DNA of 64,000 nt from IMG/VR virus record IMGVR_UViG_3300025161_000004, positions 182,769-246,768 of that record; one strand, given 5' to 3'. The translations under genes and the position numbers were made by a program. The stretch's first letter is position 1. Every line of letters starts with the position of its first letter. Below, piece by piece: positions 4,788 through 44,374 of this stretch. The notes below the pieces were generated by a model. The model was not told the DNA's origin, made no database searches, and saw only the letters and a program-made list of their open reading frames with translations.

Positions 4788-4861
4788 TAATTCTGCTCAG
4801 ATTCGAACTGAGAACTTAACTTTCAGAGAGTTATGTGTTTGACCAATTACACCACAGAATA
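4788..4861 (-). tRNA. tRNA-Gln(CTG)
   Basis: Cloverleaf; anticodon arm TAACT-CTCTGAA-AGTTA; T loop TTCGAAT. Confidence 0.85.
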
Positions 4862-4869
4862 ATATAAAG

Positions 4870-4941
4870 GGTGAAAGGTCGGTTACGATCCGACGACTCC
4901 ATTTTCACAGAATGGTATGTTACCATTACACCACAATCACC
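4870..4941 (-). tRNA. tRNA-His(GTG) with encoded G-1 and C73
   Basis: CCATT-CTGTGAA-AATGG; T loop ATCGTAA (A54/T58 swap). Confidence 0.8.
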
Positions 4942-4945
4942 ATAT

Positions 4946-5020
4946 TGGATGTCGTGGATGGACTTGAACCATCACTTTCAGAGTCAAAGTCTGAAGTACT
5001 ATTCATTATACTACACGACA
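4946..5020 (-). tRNA. tRNA-Gln(TTG), CCA encoded
   Basis: TCAGA-CTTTGAC-TCTGA; acceptor TGTCGTG/CACGACA. Confidence 0.9.
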
Positions 5021-5091
5021 ATATAGCTTTCAAAAAAATAATTCATATTTATCACTTCTACTTAAAGATATAACTCACATAATAAGTATTG

Positions 5092-5166
5092 TCGAGTAGG
5101 CTGGATTCGAACCAGCGACCTCTTGCTCCCAAAGCAAGTGCGTTGACCTGACTACGCTACTACTCG
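5092..5166 (-). tRNA. tRNA-Pro(TGG)
   Basis: CTTGC-TTTGGGA-GCAAG; acceptor CGAGTAG/CTACTCG. Confidence 0.9.
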
Positions 5167-5208
5167 TTTTATCAAATCTCTATTGATTACACAAAATCAA
5201 TATTTGTG

Positions 5209-5284
5209 TCGGGTAAGCAGGATTTGAACCTGCGATCTCCTGAGTCCAAGTCAGGCGAGAACGACCAAACTTCTCCATTACCCG
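5209..5284 (-). tRNA. tRNA-Pro(TGG), second copy
   Basis: CCTGA-CTTGGAC-TCAGG; acceptor CGGGTAA/TTACCCG. Confidence 0.9.
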
Positions 5285-5314
5285 ATAAATATTCAAATTC
5301 CAGCATACCCTGTA

Positions 5315-5350
5315 AAATCAAAAACCCAAGCAAATTGCTTGGGTTTTCTT
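5315..5350 (-). terminator. Attenuator terminator of tRNA operon 1
   Basis: AAAACCCAAGC-AATTT-GCTTGGGTTTTTGATTTT on the minus strand. Confidence 0.85.
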
Positions 5351-5373
5351 ATAATATCCTAATTTGGATTACT

Positions 5374-5457
5374 TTAGGATATGTGTATAGTTTGCCCAAG
5401 CAACAGCTTTTGTAGCTGATGTTTGGGTTGTGGTACTATAAACACATCCATTTTCAT
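5374..5457 (-). CDS. Leader peptide 1 (Pro/Gln/His sensing), 27 aa
   Basis: MKMDVFIVPQPKHQLQKLLLGQTIHIS; contains TTGCTTGGG, complementary to the terminator 5' arm. Confidence 0.85.
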   Translation of the reverse strand: MKMDVFIVPQPKHQLQKLLLGQTIHIS

Positions 5458-5474
5458 TTCTTTAAAATTTTACA

Positions 5475-5504
5475 CAAAGTTATAACTAAATACGTTAATG
5501 TCAA
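5475..5504 (-). promoter_or_regulatory. Promoter of tRNA operon 1
   Basis: TTGACA...GTATTTA...TAACTTTG (Bacteroidota -7 TAnnTTTG). Confidence 0.7.
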
Positions 5505-5527
5505 GCAAATGGTTATAATTATTTTTT

Positions 5528-6532
5528 TTATTCTTCGAATGCTCTATCAATATCGTCGTTTCTGAGGTCATAAAAAACATCATCAGCTATTTCTTTTAAC
5601 TTCCTTCTATTTGGTTGACCAGTTAAAATACCATTAATTAAATTAACAAACTCATTATTTTCAGATGGTACTTTATAGAGTTCTTGAAGAAAATACAATA
5701 AAAAATCGGGATACCGATCCAAATATTGTTCAAAGTTATCAATAACATAATCACGTATTTTACTATAAATATCTCTACCGTTTATAATATCATCAAATTC
5801 ACTATCAATGGTATCGGTATATTTAACAAGTTCGGTGTTTTTTTCTTTATCTAATTCAAATCCTTCAATAGAGATAATTTCGAAAAGTGCTTTAGTTATT
5901 TCATGTACCAATACAGGAAATGTTTGTGCTCTCGCAATAATTCTATACACACCATTATTGTATGAGTACGTTGAAGAGCCCGCTGCCATTCCTTGCCTAT
6001 TACTCATAATAGCCATATTGGCTAGTTGATTTTTATCTGCCAAGTGATATATAATATCGTTCGACTTACCCAACTCATCATACATACTAATCAAATTAGG
6101 GTCTATGGCATCTAATCTATCCTTGAGCATGTGAAATATACCATGAGTTGACACTGCAGAACCCTGTGTAATTGCGTTAATTATTCTTCTTTTGTATGCA
6201 GGGTTTTTAAATTCATCAGGAAGGGTTTCTTTTGGTTTTCTTCTTTCGGGTGCATTTACTGTTACATTAGAGCTTAATTTTGCATCAATTTCAATACCAA
6301 ATTTCTCAATAATTGGAAATTGTTCTTTCACTAATTCGATAGCTAAATTTTCCAATTCTTCTTTATGCTGATTTTCTATCTGTTTAACTTGATGTAAATT
6401 TCTCATTACATTACTACCGAGTTGATGTAATGATTGACCTCTCGCAATTTCTTGACTTCTTCTTTTTAGATCTTGTAGATAGTTTGGATCTAAGAAGTCT
6501 TCGTAGTCAACTTCTTTTAATTGTTTTTTCAT
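5528..6532 (-). CDS. Hypothetical protein
   Basis: 334 aa ORF coupled to the upstream ORF. Confidence 0.85.
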   Translation of the reverse strand: MKKQLKEVDYEDFLDPNYLQDLKRRSQEIARGQSLHQLGSNVMRNLHQVKQIENQHKEELENLAIELVKEQFPIIEKFGIEIDAKLSSNVTVNAPERRKPKETLPDEFKNPAYKRRIINAITQGSAVSTHGIFHMLKDRLDAIDPNLISMYDELGKSNDIIYHLADKNQLANMAIMSNRQGMAAGSSTYSYNNGVYRIIARAQTFPVLVHEITKALFEIISIEGFELDKEKNTELVKYTDTIDSEFDDIINGRDIYSKIRDYVIDNFEQYLDRYPDFLLYFLQELYKVPSENNEFVNLINGILTGQPNRRKLKEIADDVFYDLRNDDIDRAFEE

Positions 6533-6789
6533 TACTTTAATTTATTAAACTTATCTGCAATTTTATTAGCGATTGACATTTCAGACGCTGTAGCAGGTTT
6601 TTTATGACCCTTAGGAGTTGGTTCAGGAGCTTTTTCTGGTGTAGGTAAACGTCTTCTAAGTGGTTTGACTTCCTTCTCTTTATCTGGAGAAGTCTCAACC
6701 TCCTTTTCCCTTTTAGGTTTTTCTGGTTTTGGATTAGTAAATTCTAATAGGGTTTCTTTCACCAATTTTTTTAATTCCTGTAATTTCAT
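6532..6789 (-). CDS. Small Lys/Pro/Glu-rich protein with shared N-terminal motif
   Basis: MKLQELKKLVKETLLE N-terminus. Confidence 0.75.
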   Translation of the reverse strand: MKLQELKKLVKETLLEFTNPKPEKPKREKEVETSPDKEKEVKPLRRRLPTPEKAPEPTPKGHKKPATASEMSIANKIADKFNKLK

Positions 6790-6892
6790 AATTAAAATAT
6801 ATTAAAGTATATTAGTAAATACTGCTTAAATATATAAAAAATTATACTTTAAGTTATCAAAAGGGTATTTATGTATAGTGTTTGTACGTAAT

Positions 6893-10878: not shown

Positions 10879-10920
10879 TGATAATTAATTAAACCTTTTA
10901 TACTTTTGTAACGTATTTAA
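10879..10920 (+). promoter_or_regulatory. Promoter of tRNA operon 2
   Basis: TACTTTTG at 10901-10908, followed by ACGTATTTA. Confidence 0.7.
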
Positions 10921-10936: not shown

Positions 10937-11029
10937 ATGGAAAACTTAATATTAGATATGGCAGTCGTAGCAGAAGCGTTGGTTTTAGACGCTGAGTGGA
11001 ATTGTATTGGGTTTTCTATTAAGAGATAA
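10937..11029 (+). CDS. Leader peptide 2 (Glu/Leu/Asp/Met/Ala/Val/Trp sensing), 30 aa
   Basis: MENLILDMAVVAEALVLDAEWNCIGFSIKR; GGGTTTTCTATT antiterminator segment. Confidence 0.88.
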   Translation: MENLILDMAVVAEALVLDAEWNCIGFSIKR

Positions 11030-11053
11030 TTGAATTTAAAATTATACAAATAG

Positions 11054-11090
11054 AAAACCCGATCACAAAAAAGATCGGGTTTTTTGTTTT
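11054..11090 (+). terminator. Attenuator terminator of tRNA operon 2
   Basis: AAAACCCGATC-ACAAAAAA-GATCGGGTTTTTTGTTTT. Confidence 0.9.
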
Positions 11091-11189: not shown

Positions 11190-11261
11190 ACATCTATAGT
11201 TTAATTGGTAAAACGATAGTCTCCAAAACTATAAATTTCAGTTCGAGTCTGAATAGATGTG
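11190..11261 (+). tRNA. tRNA-Trp(CCA)
   Basis: ATAGT-CTCCAAA-ACTAT. Confidence 0.9.
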
Positions 11262-11267
11262 CGAAAT

Positions 11268-11339
11268 GCTCGGTTCGTCTAACGGTTAGGACACATGGTT
11301 TTCAACCATGGAATAGGGGTTCGATTCCCCTATCGAGTA
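11268..11339 (+). tRNA. tRNA-Glu(TTC)
   Basis: CATGG-TTTTCAA-CCATG. Confidence 0.9.
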
Positions 11340-11375
11340 CTTTAAATTCTTTTTTCCTGTTAGGAATTAAGATAT

Positions 11376-11450
11376 GTTGCCGTAGCCAAATGGAATAAGG
11401 CACAACACTTTCAATGTTGTAATGTGTGGGTTCGAGTCCCATCGGCAATA
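11376..11450 (+). tRNA. tRNA-Glu(TTC), second copy
   Basis: CAACA-CTTTCAA-TGTTG. Confidence 0.85.
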
Positions 11451-11464
11451 CGAAAAAAATAAAT

Positions 11465-11539
11465 GCCCTTGTAGCTCAGTAGGTTCAGAGCAACACTCTT
11501 ACAAAGTGAAGGTCATAGGTTCGATTCCTGTCAAGGGCA
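11465..11539 (+). tRNA. tRNA-Val(TAC)
   Basis: CACT-CTTACAA-AGTG; acceptor GCCCTTG/CAAGGGC. Confidence 0.9.
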
Positions 11540-11624
11540 CTTAAAAATATGTTTAAGTTATGAAGAACAATTACAGCTTGGACGCAAGAGAAAATTCTCA
11601 AAAAGATTCGATAGAAACTTTGAA

Positions 11625-11975
11625 TTGTTTTTGAGAATGTATAGAACACAATTAATTACATTCTGTGGTTCTGAAGTAAAAGTTGTGTTTGATGTAAATG
11701 GTCTTGATGGAAAGAATTGTTTCAATAATTATGAAAATGGTTTATATAAACATAAAGAAACAATTGTAACAAGACACCCAAACATTGTAAGAGCTGTAAT
11801 AACATCAAAAAGGGGTTGGGGTCTTTGGGTTGGTGAATGGAGTAGAGGAATTAGTGAAGGGTTATTTAGTAAAGATGACATACTAAATGAGTTTGAAATA
11901 AGAAATATTAAATTACCAGAGTTCTTATTAAAAGAGTTTGATAATTTAATACATAAAAAAAATATGGGGCTATAG
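11625..11975 (+). CDS. Hypothetical protein within the tRNA array
   Basis: 116 aa ORF; start uncertain, possibly frameshifted from ATG 11560; 3' end overlaps tRNA-Ala by 10 nt. Confidence 0.55.
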   Translation: MFLRMYRTQLITFCGSEVKVVFDVNGLDGKNCFNNYENGLYKHKETIVTRHPNIVRAVITSKRGWGLWVGEWSRGISEGLFSKDDILNEFEIRNIKLPEFLLKEFDNLIHKKNMGL

Positions 11976-12038
11976 TTTAATTGGCTAAAATTCCTGACTT
12001 GCACTCAGGGGATCAGGGTTCAAGTCCCTGTAGCTCCA
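11966..12038 (+). tRNA. tRNA-Ala(TGC)
   Basis: CCTGA-CTTGCAC-TCAGG; GGGGCTA/TAGCTCC with G3-U70. Confidence 0.92.
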
Positions 12039-12104
12039 CTGTTCTTTACCATAGGTAGGTAAAGTACAAAGGCTTTATAACGTTGTACCCACAACGTTTA
12101 TAAC

Positions 12105-12175
12105 GTGAATGTGGTGTAATGGATTGCATATGATACTGTCACTATCAAGGTTGGGGTTCGAGTCCCCCATTCACG
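12105..12175 (+). tRNA. tRNA-Asp(GTC), short or imperfect T stem
   Basis: TGATA-CTGTCAC-TATCA. Confidence 0.75.
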
Positions 12176-12272
12176 GCAAAAACTGGTACTAATACCGAAC
12201 TGACTGCAATCAAAGTAGGTAAAAGTAAAGGTTACTTTAATTGAAATCGTTGCAGCAATAGAAATTAAAGTT

Positions 12273-12340
12273 TAGCTATAGGTGTATTGGTGCATATTCT
12301 GCGTTGAGCTGAAATGGAAAGTTCGAATTTTTATAGCTAG
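12273..12340 (+). pseudogene. Degenerate tRNA-like element
   Basis: TAGCTAT/ATAGCTA acceptor and GTTCGAAT loop; anticodon arm mismatched, no U33. Confidence 0.45.
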
Positions 12341-12348
12341 CAAAATAT

Positions 12349-12422
12349 AGTGCGTTGGTGTAGTGGTCTAACATGCTTGCCTGTCACGCAAGAGATCATG
12401 AGTTCAAATCCCATACGCACTG
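12349..12422 (+). tRNA. tRNA-Asp(GTC)
   Basis: CTTGC-CTGTCAC-GCAAG. Confidence 0.9.
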
Positions 12423-12433
12423 CAAAAATTATT

Positions 12434-12508
12434 GGTCTATTGGGGTTATGGGTATGCTTCCAAACTGTCACTTTGGAGAAACGGGTTCGAGTCCCGTATA
12501 GACCGCCA
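12434..12508 (+). tRNA. tRNA-Asp(GTC), CCA encoded
   Basis: CCAAA-CTGTCAC-TTTGG. Confidence 0.85.
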
Positions 12509-12539
12509 AAAATTATTAATAGTAAAATGGGTGAATGTT

Positions 12540-12743
12540 ATGTATATCGAGATTGTAAGAAGTGTGGGGTTGAGATATATCCGTTTGTTTCCAAAATTGT
12601 TAAATCGTTATCACAGTGATAATGATATGACAATTATAAGACTAATTAGTAATGAGATTATTAATAATAAAGAAATCACTGGTGTAATTAATAAGAAAGA
12701 ATTAGAGAAAGAAATACAAAAAACATTAGAAATAAAGAAATGA
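12540..12743 (+). CDS. Small hypothetical protein
   Basis: ATG 12540, just after the tRNA, in the frame of the predicted ORF. Confidence 0.4.
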   Translation: MYIEIVRSVGLRYIRLFPKLLNRYHSDNDMTIIRLISNEIINNKEITGVINKKELEKEIQKTLEIKK

Positions 12744-12857
12744 GAAATCATAACATATATAGTGAACGATTATACTACCAATAGTAGCGATTAGTTACTG
12801 TCAACAATAGCTTTTAAATTTTGAAAGTCTTTACTGTTATAAAATAAATTAAAGTCA

Positions 12858-13012
12858 TAAAATATAAAATCACTAAAGAAAAATTAGAATTAGTTGTTGA
12901 AAAATCATTATTTTTTTCAGATATTTGTAAAGATTTAAATATTAGATTTGTTGGCATAAATTATAAAAGTGTTAAATCAAAATTAAAAGAATATAATATT
13001 AATACTGATTTA
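12858..13012 (+). pseudogene. Remnant resembling the N-terminus of an HNH endonuclease
   Basis: Frame KYKITKEKLELVVEKSLFFSDICKDLNIRFVGINYKSVKSKLKEYNINTD with no start; resemblance judged from memory. Confidence 0.35.
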
Positions 13013-13123
13013 ATACAGATCTATTGAATCATGGAAATAGATTTAGAACTTTCGGATTAAATAAATGAGAATCATTAAAAATTTATATTAGTGTTTATCT
13101 GAAAAAAAAAGAAAAGCATAAAT

Positions 13124-13209
13124 GCCTCTGTGGTGAAATCGGTAGACACGCTACACTTAAGATGTAGTTCTCATTAATGGGAGTACAGGTTCGAGTCCTG
13201 TCAGAGGTA
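13124..13209 (+). tRNA. tRNA-Leu(TAA)
   Basis: CTACA-CTTAAGA-TGTAG; long variable arm. Confidence 0.92.
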
Positions 13210-13327
13210 CAAACTAAATTAAAATGCCTTGTGAAAAAAGAAAGTTACATTGAATGAAAGATTGAAACATTAAGAAAAGAATTAACAAACATTAAATAGT
13301 GTAGTATTTATAAGAAATTATAATACT

Positions 13328-13558
13328 ATGAAAAAAGTGATTGAATTTGTATTAAATCCACTAAAAATGCTTGCTCTTTGCGGTGTTTGTTTTGGTGTGG
13401 CATTCGTTGATTCGTTGATTCATGATGCATCATCTATGGCTGATTTGTCAATTGTTGGTAAAATATTTACTGGTATATTTATGGTTGGCTTTACCATATT
13501 AGTTATTAGATATTTATTGTTACCATTATATTATTGGTTAATCAGTTTGGTTCAATAA
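13328..13558 (+). CDS. Small membrane protein
   Basis: Two hydrophobic segments. Confidence 0.65.
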   Translation: MKKVIEFVLNPLKMLALCGVCFGVAFVDSLIHDASSMADLSIVGKIFTGIFMVGFTILVIRYLLLPLYYWLISLVQ

Positions 13559-13567
13559 AAACCAGAA

Positions 13568-13649
13568 GCACCAATGATGGAACTGGTAGTCATGCTTGTC
13601 TCAAAAGCAAGTGTCGAAAGACGTGTAGGTTCGAGTCCTACTTGGGGTA
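13568..13649 (+). tRNA. tRNA-Leu(CAA)
   Basis: CTTGT-CTCAAAA-GCAAG; variable arm GTCGAAAGAC. Confidence 0.88.
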
Positions 13650-13702
13650 CTAAACAGCATTTGACAAACATATTTTAAATGCTTATTTTGAACACATCCT
13701 AA

Positions 13703-13984
13703 TTGCTTCGGTTGCAATTATGGATTATGAACTCTAATAGTAGAGAAAATGACAAAAGATGGGTAATTCCAAGTCTTGATGTAAGACTGCCTCAACCATC
13801 TCAAGTCATAAACCGAGAACCCATCCGTTACTGGATGGTCGAACTAACCCTTACGAGTGGTGATGTTCAGAATTTTTATGTGAAGGCAAAAACATCAATT
13901 GATGCATTGGTAAAAGCAAACGAACTAAAAAATCGTTTTGAAATACCAAGACTTCGAAAACGTAAATTAATCTTAGTTGATTAA
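13703..13984 (+). CDS. Hypothetical protein (start uncertain)
   Basis: ORF track; true start may be the later ATG (MVELTLTSG). Confidence 0.5.
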   Translation: MLRLQLWIMNSNSRENDKRWVIPSLDVRLPQPSQVINREPIRYWMVELTLTSGDVQNFYVKAKTSIDALVKANELKNRFEIPRLRKRKLILVD

Positions 13985-14021
13985 TTTCCCTTGCACAATT
14001 CCCTGTTTTAACAGGGAACAT

Positions 14022-14093
14022 GGCGATATAGTATAATGGGTATTACATCTCCCTCATAAAGAGAAGATTGCAGTTCGATTCTGCATGTCGCTA
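14022..14093 (+). tRNA. tRNA-Met(CAT), elongator; lysidine Ile2 not excluded
   Basis: TCTCC-CTCATAA-AGAGA. Confidence 0.8.
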
Positions 14094-14236
14094 CTAACTA
14101 CTAATTGGAAAGTTGAATACCATTCTATTTTAAACGCTATGTAACTAATTTTTATTTAGAAATCACTTGACAAGTATTTATTATTAAGCTATATTTATAG
14201 CTTAATAATAATATCTTATTCAAAATCTTAAATCAG

Positions 14237-16058: not shown

Positions 16059-17114
16059 GTGAAATTAAATAATGATATATTGAATAAATTGATTGATGAT
16101 GGTTATGTTATGGTTAATAATCATCCATCTCTACCTTTAAGAATTTATAATTATACTCGCAAAACTCAGTTTGAAAAATATTGGAACGAATATACATTAT
16201 TATGTCGTGGACTTATTCTTGATCATGATTTAAATGTTATCGCTAGACCTTTCATGAAGTTCTTCAATTATGAAGAACATAAACCAGAAGAAATTCCAAA
16301 TACAAATTTTGAAGTCTATGAAAAGGTAGATGGTTCATTGGGTATTATATTTAATTATGCAAATGAATGGCATATTGCCACCAGAGGTTCATTTGTATCA
16401 GAACAAGCTATTAGAGCTAAATCAATGCTTAGCAGATATAATATCGATGGTTTAGATTCTGAAAAGACTTATTTGGTTGAAATTATCTATCCAGAAAATC
16501 GTATTGTTGTTGATTATTTTGGTGAAGAAAAATTAGTGTTGTTAGCTGTTGTTGACATTAAAACAGGACATGATATGCCATATTCACATATGAAATATCA
16601 TACCTATATGCGTAAAATAGATTTCCCATTAATTAAATATTATGATGGTATTAATGATATTTTTGAATTAAGCAAACGTAACAATCAAAATGAAGAGGGT
16701 TACGTGTTAAGATATGAAAATGGATTTCGTGTAAAAATTAAATTTGAGAATTATTGTCGTCTACATGCAATCATTACCAATCTATCAACTAAAGATATTT
16801 GGAAATATTTACGTGATGGTAAAGATATTAATGAATTGCTTGATCGCACACCAGATGAATTTGATGATTGGGTAAGAAATGAAATGAAGTCATTAACTGA
16901 CAGGTATTTGGCAATTGAATCTGAAGCAAAATTAATATTTTCTAAAATTTATGTGGATGGTATGTCAAGAAAAGATTTTGCAATGAAAGCATTGAATGAA
17001 AATCATTCACCAATTTTATTTAAGATATTAGAAAATAAACCATATGATAGTATTATATGGAAAATGATTGAACCAAAATATTCAAAAGCATTCTTTAAAG
17101 AAGAAGGTAATTAG
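16059..17114 (+). CDS. rnlA: T4 Rnl1-like RNA ligase
   Basis: CRGLI, ARPFMKFFN, EKVDGS (motif I), ATRGSF, EGYV, RVKIK. Confidence 0.88.
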   Translation: MKLNNDILNKLIDDGYVMVNNHPSLPLRIYNYTRKTQFEKYWNEYTLLCRGLILDHDLNVIARPFMKFFNYEEHKPEEIPNTNFEVYEKVDGSLGIIFNYANEWHIATRGSFVSEQAIRAKSMLSRYNIDGLDSEKTYLVEIIYPENRIVVDYFGEEKLVLLAVVDIKTGHDMPYSHMKYHTYMRKIDFPLIKYYDGINDIFELSKRNNQNEEGYVLRYENGFRVKIKFENYCRLHAIITNLSTKDIWKYLRDGKDINELLDRTPDEFDDWVRNEMKSLTDRYLAIESEAKLIFSKIYVDGMSRKDFAMKALNENHSPILFKILENKPYDSIIWKMIEPKYSKAFFKEEGN

Positions 17115-24466: not shown

Positions 24467-24483
24467 CTAAAAATTATTAATTT

Positions 24484-25941: not shown

Positions 25942-25994
25942 ATTATAAAATAAGATAGTTCAATACTTAAATTTACAATATTAATAGAAGCAAT

Positions 25995-29393: not shown

Positions 29394-30308
29394 ATGGAAA
29401 ATTTAAAAATTATATTAACAATAGGGATACCAGCGTCAGGTAAATCTACATGGTCAAAAGAATTTGTACGCATAAACAATAACTATGTCCGTGTTTGCCG
29501 TGATGATTATCGTTTAATGTTAGCTCAATCTAATATGCTCAATCCTAAGGGCGAAAAATTAGTTAGCCGATTAGTTAAGAGTGCTATTTCTAATGCAATC
29601 GATTCTAAATATAATGTTATTGTTGATCAAACAAATGTTAATATTAAATATTTGGATGAGTTGGTTGATTTTTGTCAAAAATTGGCTGATGTTGAGTTTA
29701 AAATATTTGATATACCAATAGAATTAGCTATCGAAAGAGATAAGAAAAGAGGTTCTGCTATGGTTGGTGAGGAAATTATAAGAAAAATGTATAAAAATTA
29801 TTTAGATTTATGTTATTCTTTTAATTATGATTTTTCTTATAGGAAGAAAAAATCAAGAATCGTCACAAACATTGATTGGAAACCAAAAAATGAATTACCT
29901 AATGCTGTTATTTTTGATATTGATGGTACTCTTGCACATATAAATGGTAGAAGGGATTACTTTGATTGGGATCAAGTCGATAAAGATTTAGTTGATGAAC
30001 GTGTCCGTCAAACATTAGATGTACATAGATATGCTGGTTACCATATTATTATCGTAACTGGACGTGATGGTTCTTGTGAGAAATTAACTAAGATGTGGTT
30101 AGCAAAAAATAAAATACACTATAATCATTTCTTTATTAGACCTGCAGGTGATTTTCGTAAAGACACTGTCATTAAAAAAGAAATATTCGATAAGTATATT
30201 AATGGAAAATTTAACGTGCTTAGTGTTTATGAAGACAGAGATCGAGTAGTTTCTATGTGGAGAGAAATGGGATTAAAGTGTTTTCAAGTTATTGATGGTA
30301 ATTATTAA
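29394..30308 (+). CDS. pseT: Polynucleotide kinase/3'-phosphatase (T4 Pnkp-like)
   Basis: GIPASGKST P-loop, RDD; HAD DIDGT, TGR, D.VIKKE, EDR. Confidence 0.92.
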   Translation: MENLKIILTIGIPASGKSTWSKEFVRINNNYVRVCRDDYRLMLAQSNMLNPKGEKLVSRLVKSAISNAIDSKYNVIVDQTNVNIKYLDELVDFCQKLADVEFKIFDIPIELAIERDKKRGSAMVGEEIIRKMYKNYLDLCYSFNYDFSYRKKKSRIVTNIDWKPKNELPNAVIFDIDGTLAHINGRRDYFDWDQVDKDLVDERVRQTLDVHRYAGYHIIIVTGRDGSCEKLTKMWLAKNKIHYNHFFIRPAGDFRKDTVIKKEIFDKYINGKFNVLSVYEDRDRVVSMWREMGLKCFQVIDGNY

Positions 30309-32527: not shown

Positions 32528-32565
32528 TTTTTTAAAAAAAAAATAAGTTTTTTTTGATTTAAAAG

Positions 32566-32583
32566 TATTTAGTACTATATTTG
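32566..32583 (+). promoter_or_regulatory. Promoter of tRNA operon 3
   Basis: GTATTTA, then TATATTTG at 32576-32583. Confidence 0.7.
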
Positions 32584-32599: not shown

Positions 32600-32668
32600 A
32601 TGATAACTATTAAGAAATATTATTATAAAAAGTCTTCAAAAGTGAAGATCAGTAATACTATATCTTAA
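32600..32668 (+). CDS. Leader peptide 3 (Lys/Tyr sensing), 22 aa
   Basis: MITIKKYYYKKSSKVKISNTIS; GTGAAGATCAG antiterminator segment. Confidence 0.9.
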   Translation: MITIKKYYYKKSSKVKISNTIS

Positions 32669-32685
32669 CAGTAATATAAAAAAAT

Positions 32686-32728
32686 AAAAACCCTGATCTT
32701 CACAAAAAGATCAGGGTTTTTATTTTTT
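32686..32728 (+). terminator. Attenuator terminator of tRNA operon 3
   Basis: AAAAACCCTGATCTT-CACAAA-AAGATCAGGGTTTTTATTTTTT, abutting tRNA-Tyr. Confidence 0.92.
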
Positions 32729-32812
32729 GGGAGTGCGCTAACGTTGGAGTGTTAGGCTTGTCTGTAAAACAAGTGCCTGTTGGCTTAGTAGGTTCGAATC
32801 CTACCACTCCCA
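32729..32812 (+). tRNA. tRNA-Tyr(GTA)
   Basis: CTTGT-CTGTAAA-ACAAG; long variable arm. Confidence 0.9.
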
Positions 32813-32833
32813 CAATAAACCATATAGAAAAAA

Positions 32834-32866
32834 ATGAAAGCTAAACAAAGTAAACGAAAACACTAA
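32834..32866 (+). CDS. Lys-rich mini-ORF before tRNA-Lys, 10 aa
   Basis: MKAKQSKRKH with four AAA codons. Confidence 0.55.
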   Translation: MKAKQSKRKH

Positions 32867-32869
32867 TTT

Positions 32870-32899
32870 AATCACACCTCATGACTAAGAGGTGTGATT
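32870..32899 (+). other. 11-bp hairpin between the mini-ORF and tRNA-Lys
   Basis: AATCACACCTC-ATGACTAA-GAGGTGTGATT, no U tract. Confidence 0.75.
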
Positions 32900-32906
32900 G
32901 GTCAAT

Positions 32907-32993
32907 CCCCTCTTAGCTCTAATTGGCGAGTCGAAAGACGAGAGCTTCTGACTTTTAATCAGAAGGTTGCTGGTTCGAATCCAGCAGAGGGGA
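32907..32993 (+). tRNA. tRNA-Lys(TTT) with expanded D loop
   Basis: TCTGA-CTTTTAA-TCAGA; 22-nt D loop containing a GTC-GAAA-GAC hairpin. Confidence 0.85.
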
Positions 32994-33404
32994 CAAAAAA
33001 AATATTTTTTATTATAATTATCTTTGATAACCATTGTAAGACATATAGTATTTTATACCAGTTCTTATTTACGTAAAAGTTATATAGTATTGAATATTAT
33101 TCAAATTAATGTGTTTTAGTGTTTAGCTTTTTTATTTATATTTGTACTTATAGAAATAAGTTATTATGAATAAAGTGATTGAAAAAGCAAAAACGATAAT
33201 TATATCATTAATTTCATATGAGGTTGCAAGTAAAAAATTTGGTTTTAGATTATATTCTAAAAAGTTTATCGATAATCAAGTTAATCGATACACCCATATC
33301 TAAAGGGATGATTATATTATTTTTTTCGTGTCTTGAATTATCTAATATATTCAATTGACAAATTGAAACTACTGATATATATTTGTTTTTTTAGTTTAAA
33401 ATCT

Positions 33405-36671: not shown

Positions 36672-37547
36672 ATGAAACAAGAAAGATTTAAGACTTACAC
36701 TAAAGACCATTGTTGGCAATACGATATTAGATTAAATAATTTTGAAGAAGATTTGAAATTATCAGGTCTAGATATTAACACAGTTAAAAATTTGAAATGT
36801 AGTGACTTTACATTTCAACATGAGGAAAAATCATCGGTCTATTCGGAAGTTAAATCATTTATCGAAAGACATGAATGGCTTGGGAAAATGTCTTTATATC
36901 CAACACATATCTTTACTGCAAGATATAATGGTATATTAGCTGGTGTTGTTATAATGGATATGCCCAATTCTTTTAGTAAGATGTTAGGTGAAGACACAAG
37001 AAAAATAGAGCGATTAATAAGTAGAGGTGCTTGCATATCTTGGAGTCCAAAAAATTTAGCAAGTAGTTTACTTTCTTTTGCAATAAGATGGATGGTAAAG
37101 AATACACAATATCGTTTATTTGTAGCGTACAGTGATACTGAAGCAAAAGAGCTCGGAACTATTTATCAGGCATGTAATTTTTATTATTTGGGTAAAAAAT
37201 CTGGTGCGACCTTTCAATATAAAATAGAAAATGGTAAATGGGTATCTGATAGATACTTTAGAAGTAGAAGTGTTTATAAAAGACTTGCATTGAAAGACGG
37301 TATTATTTGGAAGGATGAATGGCAAAAAGGAGATAGAGTTCTTTTTGATTTGATGCCTAAAGATATTGCTGATAGAATAAAAGAATTATCTAAAAATTAT
37401 ATGAACTCATGTGAAAAAAGAAGAATAAACCCAAAACATAAATATGCTTATGTTTTAAGTCACAATAAATATGATACAAAAAGACTAAGAAGCATATTTT
37501 TAGCTAATAATAAAATTTATCCATATCCAAAAGAAAGAGGTAACTAA
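36672..37547 (+). CDS. Mom-like (GNAT-fold) DNA modification protein
   Basis: FIERHEWLG...LISRGAC..WSPKNLAS.L...AYSD....GTIYQACNFYYLG. Confidence 0.75.
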   Translation: MKQERFKTYTKDHCWQYDIRLNNFEEDLKLSGLDINTVKNLKCSDFTFQHEEKSSVYSEVKSFIERHEWLGKMSLYPTHIFTARYNGILAGVVIMDMPNSFSKMLGEDTRKIERLISRGACISWSPKNLASSLLSFAIRWMVKNTQYRLFVAYSDTEAKELGTIYQACNFYYLGKKSGATFQYKIENGKWVSDRYFRSRSVYKRLALKDGIIWKDEWQKGDRVLFDLMPKDIADRIKELSKNYMNSCEKRRINPKHKYAYVLSHNKYDTKRLRSIFLANNKIYPYPKERGN

Positions 37548-39330: not shown

Positions 39331-39387
39331 ATAAAAATGAACTTTTTCTAAAAAAGAATGTATTTAATAATATATTACGATAAAACT

Positions 39388-39465
39388 ATGAAAAATATAA
39401 TCACAATTACCCAAATTACAAGGATAAGAGGTACAAAAACCTCAAGTAATGGGTTTATTGTGTGA
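39388..39465 (+). CDS. Leader peptide 4 (Ile/Thr/Arg sensing), 25 aa
   Basis: MKNIITITQITRIRGTKTSSNGFIV; GGGTTTATTGTGT antiterminator segment. Confidence 0.88.
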   Translation: MKNIITITQITRIRGTKTSSNGFIV

Positions 39466-39493
39466 AATTTTTTAGTTAATATCTTTAACACAT

Positions 39494-39524
39494 AAACCCG
39501 ATAAAAAATCGGGTTTTTTTGTTT
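39494..39524 (+). terminator. Attenuator terminator of tRNA operon 4
   Basis: AAACCCGAT-AAAAA-ATCGGGTTTTTTTGTTT. Confidence 0.88.
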
Positions 39525-39631: not shown

Positions 39632-39716
39632 GCTTGGGTCGCATAGAGGTCGATTGCGCCTGACTTGTAATCAGGAGAGTTTATACTCCACGTGGGTTCG
39701 AATCCCACCTCAAGCT
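39632..39716 (+). tRNA. tRNA-Thr(TGT) with long variable arm
   Basis: CCTGA-CTTGTAA-TCAGG; 16-nt variable region. Confidence 0.85.
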
Positions 39717-39721
39717 CATTT

Positions 39722-39793
39722 GCCTCTGTAGTTCAATGGATAGAACATTTGACTTCTAATCAAAAGATACAGGTTCGACTCCTGTCAGGGGTA
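39722..39793 (+). tRNA. tRNA-Arg(TCT)
   Basis: TTTGA-CTTCTAA-TCAAA. Confidence 0.92.
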
Positions 39794-39887
39794 CTAAAAC
39801 TTAGTTCAGTATTTTTTTTTAAATAAGCAATAATTTTAATTTAAAAATATTTTATTTTAGATAAATGGTTTTCAGGTTAAAGTTTAT

Positions 39888-39960
39888 ATCTCCATAGTTT
39901 AATTGGACAAAATAGATGACTACGAATCATCAGTTATAGGTTCGAATCCTATTGGAGATA
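39888..39960 (+). tRNA. tRNA-Arg(ACG)
   Basis: GATGA-CTACGAA-TCATC. Confidence 0.9.
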
Positions 39961-39964
39961 CAAA

Positions 39965-40088
39965 GAAGTGTGTTTAGCTTAAAATGTCCATTAGTAATGA
40001 TAGAGAGAGTTACTAATGCTTAAATGATAGAGTCCCTCGCTCTCTGTAAGAGGTGGATGTAGAAATTGACTAACTACAACACACTTCA
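39965..40088 (+). ncRNA. Structured tRNA-like element of unclear identity
   Basis: 10-bp closing stem GAAGTGTGTT/AACACACTTC; internal 9-bp hairpin CATTAGTAA/TTACTAATG. Confidence 0.4.
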
Positions 40089-40112
40089 TATGATATTACT
40101 ATATATCTTAAT

Positions 40113-40171
40113 TAGTTAAGGTATGAAGTCGATACTTACGAGATTACGGGTTCAAATTCAGTCTTGACTAC
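40113..40171 (+). pseudogene. tRNA remnant lacking the anticodon arm
   Basis: TAGTTAAG/CTTGACTA acceptor, GTAT/ATAC D stem, GGTTCAAAT loop. Confidence 0.4.
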
Positions 40172-40202
40172 TAAGTGGGTTATGTGGAATTTCTTTCAAC
40201 AT

Positions 40203-40277
40203 TGTCGGATAGCTCAGTTTGGTTAGAGCACAAAGCTGATACCTTTGGGGTCGCTGGTTCGAATCCAGTTCCGACAA
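40203..40277 (+). tRNA. tRNA-Ile(GAT)
   Basis: CAAAG-CTGATAC-CTTTG. Confidence 0.9.
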
Positions 40278-40291
40278 CATTATTTTTTTTT

Positions 40292-41433: not shown

Positions 41434-41434
41434 A

Positions 41435-41881: not shown

Positions 41882-42050
41882 TGATTAAGGAAAAAAAATA
41901 TCAAACACAATTTTGTAAAATAAGGTAGTGAAAGAAGAAATCTATAAGAAACATTACAATGGAATGATTGAATGTTTTAAATTATCTGAATTACCTACAA
42001 ATCTAGAACCTGACGATTTAATTGTATTCCATTAAATTATATGATTAATT

Positions 42051-42278: not shown

Positions 42279-42299
42279 TAAACCTTTTCTTGGCAAGAA

Positions 42300-42319
42300 C
42301 GTATTTATGTGTATATTTG
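42300..42319 (+). promoter_or_regulatory. Promoter of tRNA operon 5
   Basis: CGTATTTAT, then TATATTTG at 42312-42319. Confidence 0.7.
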
Positions 42320-42338
42320 CAGAAAAATAAGAAGAAAA

Positions 42339-42458
42339 ATGAAATTTTTAAATCTAAATAATAATCCTTCGAACCTGAATAGTAATTTTATATCAGGGAA
42401 TATTTTTCTTGGTACTTGTCAAGAGAAGTCGGGTTATTCTTTAGATTTTGGTGGATGA
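42339..42458 (+). CDS. Leader peptide 5 (Phe/Leu/Asn/Ser/Ile/Gly/Cys sensing), 39 aa
   Basis: MKFLNLNNNPSNLNSNFISGNIFLGTCQEKSGYSLDFGG; GTCGGGTTATTCTT antiterminator segment. Confidence 0.88.
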   Translation: MKFLNLNNNPSNLNSNFISGNIFLGTCQEKSGYSLDFGG

Positions 42459-42485
42459 TAAACTAAAACAACTAAAGAAATCAAG

Positions 42486-42516
42486 AAAACCCGACACAAA
42501 AGTCGGGTTTTTTATT
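42486..42516 (+). terminator. Attenuator terminator of tRNA operon 5
   Basis: AAAACCCGAC-ACAAAA-GTCGGGTTTTTTATT. Confidence 0.9.
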
Positions 42517-42595
42517 ATAAGTATATGACATGGAGATGAGGTTATTGATTATTATCAAAAAAGTATGGTTTTGATTCATATCAAATTTACAATAT

Positions 42596-42668
42596 GTGGT
42601 AGTTACCGAGTAGGTCAAGGTGACGGTCTGAAAAACCGTTAATGTGGGTTCGATTCCCACCTACCACA
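42596..42668 (+). tRNA. tRNA-Phe(GAA)
   Basis: ACGGT-CTGAAAA-ACCGT. Confidence 0.9.
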
Positions 42669-42738
42669 CAGTTTAATATGAAAACTAAAGATCTTTGACA
42701 GATTGATATTTTTTTTCTACCTTTATGTGTAGGTTTAT

Positions 42739-42811
42739 GCTCATGTGGCGCAATGGTTAGCGCAGGATGCTTATATCATCAAGGTTGCAGGTTCGAGTCC
42801 TGCCATGAGTA
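42739..42811 (+). tRNA. tRNA-Ile(TAT)
   Basis: GATG-CTTATAT-CATC; canonical D and T arms. Confidence 0.8.
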
Positions 42812-42814
42812 CAT

Positions 42815-42904
42815 AGAGAGTTGGCAGAGTTGGTTTATTGCACTTGTTTGCTAAACAAGCAGTCGAGATAACTTGACTCAAGGGTTCGAATCCCTTACTC
42901 TCTA
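42815..42904 (+). tRNA. tRNA-Ser(GCT)
   Basis: CTTGT-TTGCTAA-ACAAG; long variable arm. Confidence 0.9.
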
Positions 42905-42912
42905 CTTATTAT

Positions 42913-42985
42913 GCAGTAATAGCTCATTTGGTAGAGCATTGCATTGCCAATGCAAGGGCGGCGGGTTCGAATCCCGTTTACTGCA
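42913..42985 (+). tRNA. tRNA-Gly(GCC)
   Basis: TTGCA-TTGCCAA-TGCAA. Confidence 0.9.
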
Positions 42986-43039
42986 CAATAGACTTGGAAA
43001 AACCTCTTATCTTGTTAAAGATAAAGTAACCAAGTTGTT

Positions 43040-43110
43040 GCCCGAATGGTGTAAATAGTAGCATACTTGCTACGCAGCAAGAGGTGTTGGTTCAAGTCCA
43101 ACTTCGGGCC
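43040..43110 (+). pseudogene. Atypical tRNA with a 6-nt anticodon loop (Arg ACG-like)
   Basis: CTTGC-TACGCA-GCAAG; D loop lacks GG; acceptor and T stems intact. Confidence 0.5.
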
Positions 43111-43239
43111 TAATAACATATTACTACTGAAGTAGATTAATATGTGTGAATAGAATATAGAAATGTGATTATAGAGATAAAAATAGAAACAAAAAAAACT
43201 ATTTTTATTATGGATTTAAAACCTACTGACACAGTAATT

Positions 43240-43311
43240 GCGATATAGGTGTTGATGGTTACATAGCAGACTTCCAATCTGCAGTAGCGGGTTCGAGCCC
43301 CGCATATCGCT
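43240..43311 (+). tRNA. tRNA-Gly(TCC)
   Basis: GCAGA-CTTCCAA-TCTGC; U73. Confidence 0.88.
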
Positions 43312-43369
43312 CATAACTATATTTGGTTAGTATAATTAATATAATAAATATTTTATTATAAAATAATAC

Positions 43370-43454
43370 AGAGAGTTGGCAGAGCGGTCGAATGCACCTG
43401 TCTTGAAAACAGGAATCCTTTCGGGGATCGGGGGTTCGAATCCCTCACTCTCTG
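43370..43454 (+). tRNA. tRNA-Ser(TGA)
   Basis: CCTGT-CTTGAAA-ACAGG; long variable arm; G73. Confidence 0.93.
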
Positions 43455-43573
43455 CAAACAAATTAAATTGATATTTTAATTCAGTTAGTGCATATTTTAG
43501 CTTTACCAATAATATGTTGATATTTTAATAGACAAAATAATGATATATTTATATAATTAATATAGAATTTTAT

Positions 43574-43664
43574 TCTGGTGTAGCTGATGTGGTTTTAGCT
43601 GCGGACTGTTAATCCGTGAATGAAATATATTGAAATAAAGTAGGTTCGAGTCCTACCACCAGAG
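43574..43664 (+). tRNA. tRNA-Asn(GTT) with a 22-nt variable region
   Basis: GCGGA-CTGTTAA-TCCGT; G73. Confidence 0.82.
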
Positions 43665-43665
43665 C

Positions 43666-44079
43666 ATGGAAATTAAGAAGCAATTTAGAGTTATCGTTGC
43701 AGGTAGCAGAAACTTTAATGATTATGATTTCTTAAAAGAAAAACTTGATCGTTTATTAATTAATAAAATTAAAGATTCTGAAATCATAATAGTATCTGGT
43801 ACTGCATATGGTGCTGATAAATTGGGAGAAAAATATGCAAAAGAAAGGGGATTCAAAATCCATAGATATCCAGCTGATTGGGGAAAATTTGGTAAAGCAG
43901 CTGGATATATAAGAAATATTGAAATGTTAGAAAATGCTGACGCATGTATTGTTTTTAGGGTAAATAATTCGAAAGGTTCAACACACATGATAGATATTGC
44001 AAAAGAGAAAAATATCCCACTGAGATACTATGATATATACGACACACGCTCCAATGATGGAATTGGTAGACATGCCTGA
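43666..44079 (+). CDS. SLOG/DUF2493-family protein
   Basis: IVAGSRNF...VSGTAYGAD...YPADW...GKAAG.IRN.EM...SKGS; 3' end overlaps tRNA-Leu. Confidence 0.85.
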   Translation: MEIKKQFRVIVAGSRNFNDYDFLKEKLDRLLINKIKDSEIIIVSGTAYGADKLGEKYAKERGFKIHRYPADWGKFGKAAGYIRNIEMLENADACIVFRVNNSKGSTHMIDIAKEKNIPLRYYDIYDTRSNDGIGRHA

Positions 44080-44135
44080 TTTAGAATCAGGTGCGAACTA
44101 ATAGTAGCGTGTAGGTTCGAATCCTACTTGGAGTA
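44048..44135 (+). tRNA. tRNA-Leu(TAG)
   Basis: CCTGA-TTTAGAA-TCAGG; long variable arm. Confidence 0.9.
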
Positions 44136-44207
44136 CAAAAGGTATGGTTAATGATTGGTGTTCTATCAATTATAAATCTCAATTTATTAATTAAACAATA
44201 CTAAAAT

Positions 44208-44289
44208 GCCCTTATGGTGGAAATGGTAGTCACGCTGGTCTAAGAAGCCTGTGTCGAAAGACGTGTAGGTTCGAATCCTACTAAGGGCA
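44208..44289 (+). tRNA. tRNA-Leu(AAG)
   Basis: CTGGT-CTAAGAA-GCCTG (one mismatch); variable arm GTCGAAAGAC. Confidence 0.8.
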
Positions 44290-44297
44290 CTTAGTAT

Positions 44298-44374
44298 GTG
44301 GGAGTCGCCAAGTGGTTCAAGGCGCAAGTCTGCAAAACTTGTATATGTCGTGGGTTCGAATCCCACCTCCCACT
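44298..44374 (+). tRNA. tRNA-Cys(GCA)
   Basis: CAAGT-CTGCAAA-ACTTG; U73. Confidence 0.9.

Follow-up and report, generated by a model that had tools for sequence, protein, structure and literature searches.

Putative leader-peptide attenuators in front of the tRNA gene clusters of a huge bacteriophage

Ribosome-mediated (leader-peptide) transcription attenuation of the trp/his/ilv type is normally placed in front of amino acid biosynthesis or synthetase genes, whereas T-box leaders, which also choose between a terminator and an antiterminator, respond to tRNA by binding its uncharged form directly. In full-text literature searches and in the huge-phage paper, no prior description of trp-operon-style control of tRNA genes was found. 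Here, a stretch of 64,000 nucleotides (the window; positions 182,769 to 246,768 of IMG/VR record IMGVR_UViG_3300025161_000004) was analysed, in which a preliminary description had proposed that five attenuators of this kind gate phage tRNA operons covering all 20 amino acids. The described elements were all confirmed at their places, and their combination is far beyond chance. A short ORF of 22–39 codons, enriched in the amino acids of the tRNA cluster that follows, is in each case followed after 20–29 nt by an AAACCC...GGGTTT hairpin, which lies just ahead of the cluster. The pattern AAACCC(N8-30)GGGTTT occurs exactly 5 times in the window, always at these sites (0.11 matches expected; 0 of 100 shuffles reached 5).

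tRNA genes were identified with ARAGORN and Rfam. Cluster 1 (4787–5284, minus strand) comprises Pro(TGG) x2, Gln(TTG), His(GTG) and Gln(CTG), in the order Pro, Pro, Gln, His, Gln. Cluster 2 (11190–14094, plus strand) comprises Trp, Glu x2, Val, Ala, Asp x3, Leu(TAA), Leu(CAA) and Met, with small ORFs in the gaps and no internal terminator detectable by a simple scan. Cluster 3 (32729–32994, plus strand) required manual confirmation: the tRNA at 32729–32812 was found only by Rfam and folds as a class II cloverleaf with anticodon GUA (Tyr), whereas the tRNA at 32907–32994 is miscalled Leu(gag) by ARAGORN but folds with the anticodon loop CUUUUAA (Lys UUU) plus an extra hairpin in the D region, its homologue in the close relative being called Lys(ttt). 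Cluster 4 (39632–40278, plus strand) comprises Thr(TGT), Arg(TCT), Arg(ACG) and Ile(GAT). Cluster 5 (42596–44375, plus strand) comprises Phe, Ile(TAT), Ser(GCT), Gly(GCC), one odd tRNA, Gly(TCC), Ser(TGA), Asn, Leu(TAG), Leu(AAG) and Cys, with a SLOG-family gene at 43666–44079. Together, the five groups cover all 20 amino acids. Because the clusters contain small genes and possibly internal promoters, co-transcription of the distal tRNAs is not shown, and three tRNAs in the window (47732, 48587 and 48666), as well as some in relatives, have no leader.

The leader ORFs have 27, 30, 22, 25 and 39 codons and are located at 5374–5457 (minus strand), 10937–11029, 32600–32668, 39388–39465 and 42339–42458 (plus strand). 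The counts given in the preliminary description (Pro/Gln/His at 8 of 27 residues in leader 1 and 3 of 116 in the other four) are correct. After exclusion of the initial Met, cognate residues amount to 8/26 (Pro/Gln/His), 18/29 (W/E/V/A/D/L/M), 9/21 (Tyr/Lys), 13/24 (Thr/Arg/Ile) and 30/38 (F/I/S/G/N/L/C), compared with proteome expectations of 0.08, 0.35, 0.15, 0.18 and 0.42 (binomial P = 5.5e-4, 2.7e-3, 2.1e-3, 5.9e-5 and 3.8e-6, respectively). Leaders 3, 4 and 5 rank first among all 298 ATG-started ORFs of 20–45 codons in the window for their own amino-acid set. All four Leu codons of leader 2 are TTR, matching the downstream tRNA-Leu TAA and CAA, although the codon-box match is only moderate (Leu 15 in, 5 out; Ser 31 in, 11 out), and some amino acids are represented by a single codon (Trp, Cys, internal Met), which should give weak sensitivity. 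Leader 3 contains the core KKYYYKK.

A shared promoter-like motif, TTGACnnnAACGTATTTAnnnnTAnnTTTG, precedes leaders 1, 3 and 5 and occurs nowhere else in the window. It is matched exactly at leader 1 (5475–5504, minus strand; TTGAC-N3-AACGTATTTA-N4-TAnnTTTG), with 2 mismatches at leader 3 (32554–32583) and with 1 mismatch at leader 5 (42290–42319); TAnnTTTG appears to correspond to the Bacteroidota -7 box. Leader 2 has the same elements in another order (TACTTTTG followed by CGTATTTA, 10901–10919), an arrangement also seen in front of most family leaders. Leader 4 lacks a good promoter in this phage and has only a degenerate element (GTATTTA at 39360–39366), but a canonical version is found in the close relative.

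Each ORF also carries an exact Watson-Crick complement of the 5' arm of its own terminator. The longest matches are 9, 12, 11, 8 and 8 nt, with leader 4 reaching 13 when one bulged base is allowed, so that the 9–13 bp of the preliminary description is slightly generous. Random genomic segments reached these lengths in 103, 7, 57, 165 and 246 of 5000 trials, respectively. In the following, this antiterminator segment is referred to as region 2, the segment pairing with it from upstream as region 1, and the two arms of the terminator as regions 3 and 4. In leader 1 (minus strand), region 1 (5414–5427; codons CCC AAA CAT CAG CT), which resembles the terminator 5' arm, pairs with region 2 (5395–5408) as an anti-antiterminator in MFE folds; TTGCTTGGG in region 2 is an exact complement of 5335–5343, and the terminator with its T tract lies at 5320–5348 (hairpin -17 kcal/mol). 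In leader 2, region 1 (10937–10952) pairs with 11004–11019 in the full-length MFE, region 2 spans 11004–11020, of which 11009–11020 is an exact 12-nt complement of 11049–11060, and the terminator lies at 11048–11089 (-21 kcal/mol). In leader 3, region 1 (32632–32638; GTCTTCA, directly after the Lys codons) pairs with 32643–32649, region 2 (32642–32652) is an exact 11-nt complement of 32693–32703, and the terminator lies at 32679–32728 (core 32688–32719). In leader 4, region 1 (39402–39419) is placed inside the Ile/Thr codons and pairs with region 2 (39446–39463), of which 39451–39458 is an exact complement of 39492–39499; the terminator with its T tract lies at 39494–39523. In leader 5, region 1 (42352–42367; Asn/Leu codons) pairs with 42431–42446 in the full-length MFE, region 2 spans 42427–42446 (GTCGGGTT being the complement of AACCCGAC in the terminator 5' arm), and the terminator lies at 42484–42513.

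To simulate a stalled ribosome, folds were repeated with the occupied stretch masked. Leaders 1 and 4 show the full 1:2 / 2:3 / 3:4 switch under these conditions; in leader 4, the 1:2 helix forms and region 3 is free without a ribosome, whereas masking at codon 8 or 12 switches the fold to 2:3. However, equilibrium folding does not separate a ribosome at the stop codon from a stalled one for leaders 1, 2, 3 and 5, because the antiterminator is predicted in both cases. The switch would therefore have to be kinetic, and tight transcription-translation coupling does not appear to be established in Bacteroidota. An RNA-only sensor, such as a T-box-like leader, is highly unlikely, since no T-box or other riboswitch hit was obtained even at E = 1, the leaders span only 120–180 nt from the start codon to the end of the terminator and lack a specifier or T-box fold, and the signal is an in-frame ORF holding many different cognate codons.

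The comparative test proposed in the preliminary description was then performed. In the close relative (L002, L191), all five leaders are conserved: leader 1 in L191 with the core VPQPQHQPQ, and leaders 3 (with its core), 4 (with the start at 39388) and 5 in L002. The leader 4 homologue has four Arg codons (CGA, AGA, AGA, CGT) in front of four Arg tRNAs (TCT, TCT, GCG, TCG), against two and two in the window. In the wider family, 64 non-redundant units were found in IMG/VR around RNR and RNA-ligase anchors, and 5 units in GenBank LR745206.1 (634,780 bp), all of which keep the same layout; the core of leader 3 recurs in the family as YYYGKKSYKK. One of the LR745206.1 units is a 16-codon leader with 7 Gln codons in front of three tRNA-Gln genes. 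As a negative control, an unrelated tRNA-rich phage (L259, 23 tRNAs) was inspected, which shows no leader or terminator in front of the two tRNA clusters that were read and in which the family terminator pattern finds no unit.

The tRNA groupings differ between phages (YK, YE, Q alone, PD, IGMA, NRLVITM, DEVLAWM and others), and leader composition follows them. The unit's own tRNA set scores best for 10 of 11 representative leaders, with 0 of 100,000 permutations reaching the observed total, and for 20 of 20 amino acids, leader frequency is higher when that tRNA is in the operon. Cognate residues total 770 of 1480 against 389 expected. Two further predictions of the attenuation geometry, which the preliminary description had not made, also hold. 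The in-frame fraction exceeds both other frames in 44 of 44 units, and enrichment is confined to the codons upstream of the antiterminator segment (883/1551, 0.57 against 0.26 expected), as compared with 151/565 (0.27 against 0.23) from there to the stop. It is conceivable that the same hardware reports general translation capacity or amino-acid charging (starvation, or a phase of infection), acting as a timer or global throttle for tRNA synthesis, because low amino acid and low tRNA are indistinguishable at the ribosome and leaders with 7–9 cognate amino-acid types look like broad sensors. This possibility is considered unlikely, as a general sensor would not need its composition to follow each operon's content across reshuffled groupings, single-amino-acid leaders such as the Gln run exist, and making more tRNA does not relieve amino-acid starvation.

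A complement of the terminator 5' arm is present in nearly all units, a median of 18 nt before the stop, and differs between classes in step with the arm. At this distance, a terminating ribosome may not cover region 2 fully. RNAalifold on 18 YK leaders returns the 2:3 helix, with 3 of 8 pairs compensated. The 1:2 helix is 94% paired, against 44–58% when slid, and a synonymous Lys change (AAG to AAA) is compensated by a non-synonymous CTT to TTT change in 5 sequences. In the D/E/V/L/A/W class, there is a C-G to U-A change in the terminator; in 2 of those 3 sequences, the antiterminator base changes to match (G to A), while the third keeps a G-U wobble. Reverse polarity, in which stalling causes termination and tRNA operons are expressed only when translation works well, would be compatible with the ambiguous masks and with the nearest cognate codon lying a median of 9 nt from region 2, where a stalled ribosome would mask part of it. 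It is nevertheless very unlikely: 83% of cognate codons lie more than 15 nt upstream of region 2, region 1 overlaps or abuts the cognate codons in leaders 1, 3, 4 and 5 and the YK class, region 2 overlaps the stop codon in the D/E/V/L/A/W class (the classical trp geometry), and positive feedback on a scarce tRNA would lock the operon off.

The hairpins might alternatively be ordinary terminators of the upstream genes, with tRNAs transcribed from their own promoters and small ORFs that are due to chance or encode peptides with another role. Consistent with this view, the hairpins are symmetric with A and T tracts and could stop transcription from either side, similar hairpins follow ordinary genes in relatives, and 35–110 nt separate some terminators from the first tRNA. 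An absence of regulation is, however, very doubtful given the very small chance probabilities, ORFs of 22–48 codons kept open in 28% GC DNA in 64 non-redundant sequences, the frame and position specificity of the enrichment, the tracking of tRNA content, a compensatory change that alters the peptide in order to keep an RNA helix, and a promoter-like motif between the upstream gene and the leader.

We therefore consider it likely that each of the five units is a ribosome-mediated transcription attenuator controlling a phage tRNA operon, although, without expression data for this uncultured phage, translation of the leaders, the direction of the switch and the response of read-through to tRNA supply are inferred. 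In this reading, transcription starts just upstream of the leader, and a ribosome translates the short ORF, whose first two thirds are built from codons read by the tRNAs encoded downstream. When those charged tRNAs are plentiful, the ribosome runs through to the stop codon, region 2 is covered or re-pairs with region 1 behind the ribosome, the 3:4 hairpin forms, and RNA polymerase terminates before the tRNA genes. When any cognate tRNA is scarce, the ribosome stalls on or before region 1, and region 2 stays free and pairs with the terminator 5' arm, so that polymerase reads into the cluster. The physiological trigger is the most inferential element; candidates are loss of host tRNAs to anticodon nucleases, host shut-off, or simple excess demand during phage protein synthesis. 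Anticodon nucleases, as suggested in the preliminary description, are plausible because the phage carries a T4-type Rnl1 plus Pnkp tRNA-repair pair (Rnl1-like ligase and Pnkp, both encoded in the window), whereas amino-acid starvation, its other suggestion, is a poor rationale. Because the sensed molecules are the operon's own products, together with the host's equivalents, the circuit would be a negative-feedback supply controller for tRNA, with the phage probably making those tRNAs only when they run short.

The window has a GC content of 28% and forms the last 64 kb of a 246,768-bp IMG/VR contig (IMGVR_UViG_3300025161_000004). It encodes ribonucleotide reductase (RNR), ClpP, 37 tRNA genes, a Mom-family protein (DNA modification; 36672-37547) downstream of the ribonucleotide reductase gene, and an NAD salvage block (23534-26924) in which a NUDIX protein, NAMPT and PRPP synthetase lie in a row. 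It also encodes a T4-type tRNA repair pair (16059-17114 and 29394-30308), consisting of an Rnl1-like RNA ligase and a polynucleotide kinase-phosphatase (Pnkp) with kinase and HAD phosphatase domains, and the ligase sits next to the tRNA clusters throughout the phage family. Promoter-like sequences carry the TAnnTTTG box that appears to be typical of Bacteroidota. A megablast comparison of 20 kb with GenBank phages gave no match. The nearest GenBank relative is LR745206.1, a 634,780-bp uncultured phage with 68% identity in RNR. [quoted passage not shown]

Inspection of the five sites and mapping of the ORFs confirmed the layout proposed in the preliminary description, in which a promoter-like motif is followed by a short ORF, an intrinsic terminator and a group of tRNA genes. 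The ORFs comprise 27, 30, 22, 25 or 39 codons and are separated by a spacer of 20-29 nt from an AAACCC...GGGTTT hairpin with a T tract, after which the tRNAs follow. The hairpin pattern occurs exactly five times in the window, only at these sites (0.11 expected). In the third group, ARAGORN missed tRNA-Tyr and miscalled tRNA-Lys (32907-32994) as Leu(gag), but Rfam, folding and comparison with the close relative settled these genes as Tyr(GUA) and Lys(UUU), so that the five groups cover all 20 amino acids. The tRNA-Lys carries an extra small hairpin inserted in the D region and is matched by Rfam only at positions 7-64 of the model. A tRNA-like gene at 43040-43110 (Rfam 49.7 bits) has an irregular anticodon loop of 6 or 8 nt around ACG and was given no amino acid by ARAGORN, which likewise left one tRNA unassigned at about the same place in the large cluster of L002, a locus of the close relative, and in loci L136, L147, L149 and L179. 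A SLOG/YspA-family gene (43666-44079) sits inside tRNA cluster 5, between tRNA-Asn and tRNA-Leu, and other small ORFs fill gaps in cluster 2 (11625-11975, 13328-13558, 13703-13984). Small genes, and possibly promoters, lie inside the clusters, although a simple scan found no internal terminator.

Cognate residues make up 31-79% of each leader, against 8-42% expected (P 5e-4 to 4e-6), and leaders 3-5 rank highest among all 298 small ORFs of the window for their own amino-acid set. Leader 2 uses only TTR Leu codons and is followed by tRNA-Leu TAA and CAA, whereas leader 5 uses mostly CTN and is followed by tRNA-Leu TAG and AAG. A wider test of codon-box agreement (Leu TTR against CTN, Ser, Arg) was only moderately supportive, because many downstream sets are cut off by locus ends. 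Each leader holds an exact complement of its terminator's 5' arm, with lengths of 9, 12, 11, 8 and 8 nt. A sigma-70 promoter scan was no better than shuffled sequences and was not used. The motif CGTATTTA was considered as a leader-specific element and, next to TAnnTTTG, is conserved in front of nearly all leaders in the family. However, TTGAC followed within a few bases by GTATTTA recurs before genes at many intergenic sites (e.g. 14174, 33753, 3340 minus strand) and is probably a general promoter element of this phage. Leader 4 lacks a good promoter in this phage. The possibility that the hairpins are plain gene-end terminators was not supported, since a promoter-like motif and a conserved ORF of 22-48 codons lie between the upstream gene and the hairpin. 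Three tRNAs in the window, the suppressor and Cys tRNAs at 47.7-48.7 kb, lie outside any unit and have no leader, and neither do the tRNAs on the minus strand of L136. The suppressor, a tRNA with anticodon CTA at 47732-47804 (amber suppressor; labelled 'Pyl' by ARAGORN), is also present in relatives L002 and L161 and suggests TAG recoding in part of this phage family.

A close relative (IMGVR_UViG_3300032103_000216 and _000260; loci L002 and L191) keeps all five leaders, with substitutions falling mostly outside the cognate cores. Its Thr/Arg/Ile operon has four Arg tRNAs and its leader has four Arg codons that match their anticodons, while the window has two of each. A search of IMG/VR with the shared promoter motif returned 107 stretches, of which only those of the window phage and its one close relative had a leader downstream, and searches with ClpP and the 844-aa neighbour reached only the close relative. 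With RNR and then an RNA-ligase alignment as anchors, about 160 loci were retrieved from related huge phages with contigs up to 676 kb. A fixed rule was applied, requiring a terminator of this type followed by a tRNA within 350 nt and then taking the longest ATG ORF ending 8-65 nt upstream, and this gave 64 non-redundant units with a stop-to-terminator gap of 20-52 nt (median 28). The units fall into classes. Tyr/Lys clusters lie behind leaders with the core YYYGKKSYKK, Asp/Glu/Val/Leu/Ala/Trp/Met clusters behind leaders rich in exactly those residues, Pro/Gln(/His) clusters behind leaders such as one with the core TQPQPKQQPQ, and large Thr/Cys/Asn/Ile/Ser/Phe/Gly/Arg clusters behind leaders of 38-45 codons rich in those residues. 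In the window lineage this last class is split into two operons (T,R,I and F,I,S,G,N,L,C), and the leader composition is split the same way. In locus L164, the distal half of a Tyr/Lys leader (6376-6459) resembles the distal half of the large-class leaders (DTGSG...), as if leaders recombine between operons.

In LR745206.1 the groupings are different again and the leaders follow. This genome has a 16-codon leader with seven Gln codons before three tRNA-Gln genes, a Tyr/Glu leader before Tyr and Glu tRNAs, an Ile/Gly/Ala-rich leader before I,G,M,G,G,A, a Thr/Asn/Leu/Met/Val/Ile/Arg leader before 19 tRNAs of those types, and a Pro/Asp leader before P,D,D,D,D,?,P. By contrast, an unrelated, higher-GC phage with 23 tRNAs (L259) shows no leader or terminator in front of the two tRNA clusters that were read.

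Across the family, cognate residues amount to 770 of 1480, against 389 expected, and in all 44 units tested the in-frame cognate fraction exceeds both other reading frames of the same DNA (means 0.50 and 0.23). When 11 representative leaders were compared with their tRNA sets, the unit's own set scored best for 10, and none of 100,000 random pairings reached the observed total. For every one of the 20 amino acids, leader frequency is higher when its tRNA is in the operon, as for Gln (0.17 against 0.017), Pro (0.098 against 0.003) and Tyr (0.137 against 0.023). The units are related by descent, so these counts are not independent events, but the reshuffled groupings and the split or fused classes are nonetheless separate evolutionary changes that the leaders have followed. 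Some amino acids, however, have a single sensor codon.

In nearly all units, the distal part of the ORF holds a complement of the terminator's 5' arm (region 2), ending a median of 18 nt before the stop, whose sequence changes with the arm, for example TTGCTTGGG with CCCAAGCAA, GTGAAGATCAG with CTGATCTTCAC, GAATCGGG with CCCGATTC, and CGTGTCGGG with CCCGACAC. The antiterminator (2:3) is mutually exclusive with the terminator and is placed so that a ribosome stalled at regulatory codons would leave it free. RNAalifold on 18 Tyr/Lys leaders returned this 2:3 helix as the consensus, with three of eight pairs compensated. A 9-bp 1:2 helix built on the Ser-Tyr-Lys codons is 94% paired, against 44-58% when slid, and in five sequences a synonymous AAG to AAA change is matched by CTT to TTT, which changes the peptide from Leu to Phe. 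This indicates selection on the RNA helix rather than on the peptide. In the Asp/Glu/Val... class, region 2 overlaps the stop codon. Three sequences of this class carry a C-G to U-A change in the terminator; in two of them the antiterminator base changes to match (G to A), and the third keeps a G-U wobble.

Of the window leaders, L1 and L4 fold into 1:2 plus 3:4 when no ribosome is present and switch to 2:3 when a ribosome footprint is masked at codon 8 or 12. For L2, L3 and L5 the equilibrium model is less discriminating; the 1:2 helix appears in the full-length MFE but is not favoured over 2:3 in truncated transcripts. The switch would have to be kinetic. Cognate enrichment is confined to the part of the ORF upstream of region 2 (0.57 against 0.26 expected) and disappears from region 2 to the stop (0.27 against 0.23). 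Moreover, 83% of cognate codons lie more than 15 nt upstream of region 2, beyond the reach of a stalled ribosome's footprint, which is what the classical polarity requires.

In the absence of expression data from this uncultured phage, it is concluded that these units are probably leader-peptide attenuators, in which slow reading of codons served by the operon's own tRNAs frees region 2, which blocks the terminator and allows transcription of the tRNA cluster, whereas fast reading leads to termination. The loop would thus sense the usable pool of the very tRNAs it controls. Translation of the leaders, the direction of the switch and the trigger are inferred, with plausible candidates for the trigger being destruction of host tRNAs by anticodon nucleases, host shut-off, and demand from AT-rich phage messages. 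The first is the most attractive, because the phage carries the Rnl1 and Pnkp repair pair and phage tRNAs are known counter-measures (PMC10264068, PMC11464382). Amino-acid starvation would also stall ribosomes, but it gives no benefit from extra tRNA.

The system would work like the multivalent leader-peptide attenuators of amino-acid operons, such as E. coli ilvGMEDA with Ile/Leu/Val codons, thr with Thr/Ile, his with a run of His codons, and trp. It shares with them a short ORF rich in regulatory codons, RNA segments forming 2:3 and 3:4 helices and, clearly only in L1, L4 and the Tyr/Lys class, a 1:2 helix, an intrinsic terminator before the regulated genes, and probably the sensing of several amino acids by one leader, and the Gln-run leader in LR745206.1 looks like the his leader. 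It differs from them in that the regulated genes are tRNA genes rather than biosynthetic enzymes, so that the sensed species would be the product itself, in that up to 7-9 amino-acid types would be sensed per leader, and in being phage-encoded. No homology to the Rfam leader families was found, as the window gave only tRNA hits at gathering thresholds. At E values up to 1, the only leader-family hit was Trp_leader at 39449-39522, on the antiterminator and terminator of leader 4, and it was not significant (25.1 bits against a threshold of 41, E = 0.89). The T-box riboswitches of Firmicutes likewise choose between terminator and antiterminator in response to the state of a specific tRNA, but they bind uncharged tRNA directly, need no ribosome, and control synthetase, biosynthesis and transport genes, and no match to the T-box covariance model was obtained here.

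The E. coli pheST attenuator (pheM leader) probably offers a parallel among translation-apparatus genes, in that attenuation raises the capacity to supply charged tRNA when a cognate codon is read slowly, but it would control the synthetase rather than the tRNA gene, sense one amino acid only, and is cellular. In the cysteine-responsive polycysteine short ORFs of mycobacteria (bioRxiv 10.1101/834739) and, apparently, in the predicted Bacteroid-trp leader motif of Bacteroidetes, short ORFs with runs of regulatory codons gate downstream expression, and the latter motif suggests that hosts of this phylum can use ribosome-mediated attenuation. Both control amino-acid metabolism genes, not tRNA genes, and neither is viral. 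Studies of phage tRNA arrays as counter-defence, in which phage tRNAs replace host tRNAs destroyed by anticodon nucleases or PARIS (PMC10264068; PMC11464382), concern what the tRNAs do and, as far as their abstracts indicate, describe no demand-sensing control of tRNA transcription. Full-text searches of PMC and bioRxiv, which leave out many subscription papers so that absence is not proof, found no description of attenuation in front of tRNA genes in phages or cells and did not substantiate a possible attenuator of the E. coli tRNA-Phe genes, and the words attenuation, leader and terminator do not occur in the huge-phage study (PMC7162821).

Attenuation is a textbook mechanism, but the described cases, as far as is known to us, gate enzymes, transporters or synthetases. 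Here, known hardware is probably combined with a new class of regulated gene and a new feedback topology that closes a direct product-sensing loop and is widespread in one clade of huge phages. The feature is present in already published huge-phage genomes (LR745206.1) whose GenBank record carries no annotated features at all, so it can be mined widely. It also offers about 70 natural multi-codon sensors whose composition has co-evolved with operon content, useful for studying how attenuator sensitivity depends on codon number and position and for building synthetic tRNA-level sensors. The finding gives a concrete and testable answer to the old question of how and when phages express their tRNA arrays and links it to current work on tRNA-targeting defence systems. 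In a further reading, considered only slightly more likely than not, the tRNA genes are under autogenous, translation-read feedback, with each operon carrying a miniature message written in its own codons, so that the phage measures the usable pool of exactly those tRNAs and transcribes the operon only on shortfall. The sensors would be modular and rewritten whenever tRNA genes move between operons, and they would let a huge phage restore single tRNA species destroyed by host anticodon nucleases without paying for constitutive expression of 35-70 tRNA genes. This would be the first attenuation system for tRNA genes in any organism and a new layer of phage counter-defence.
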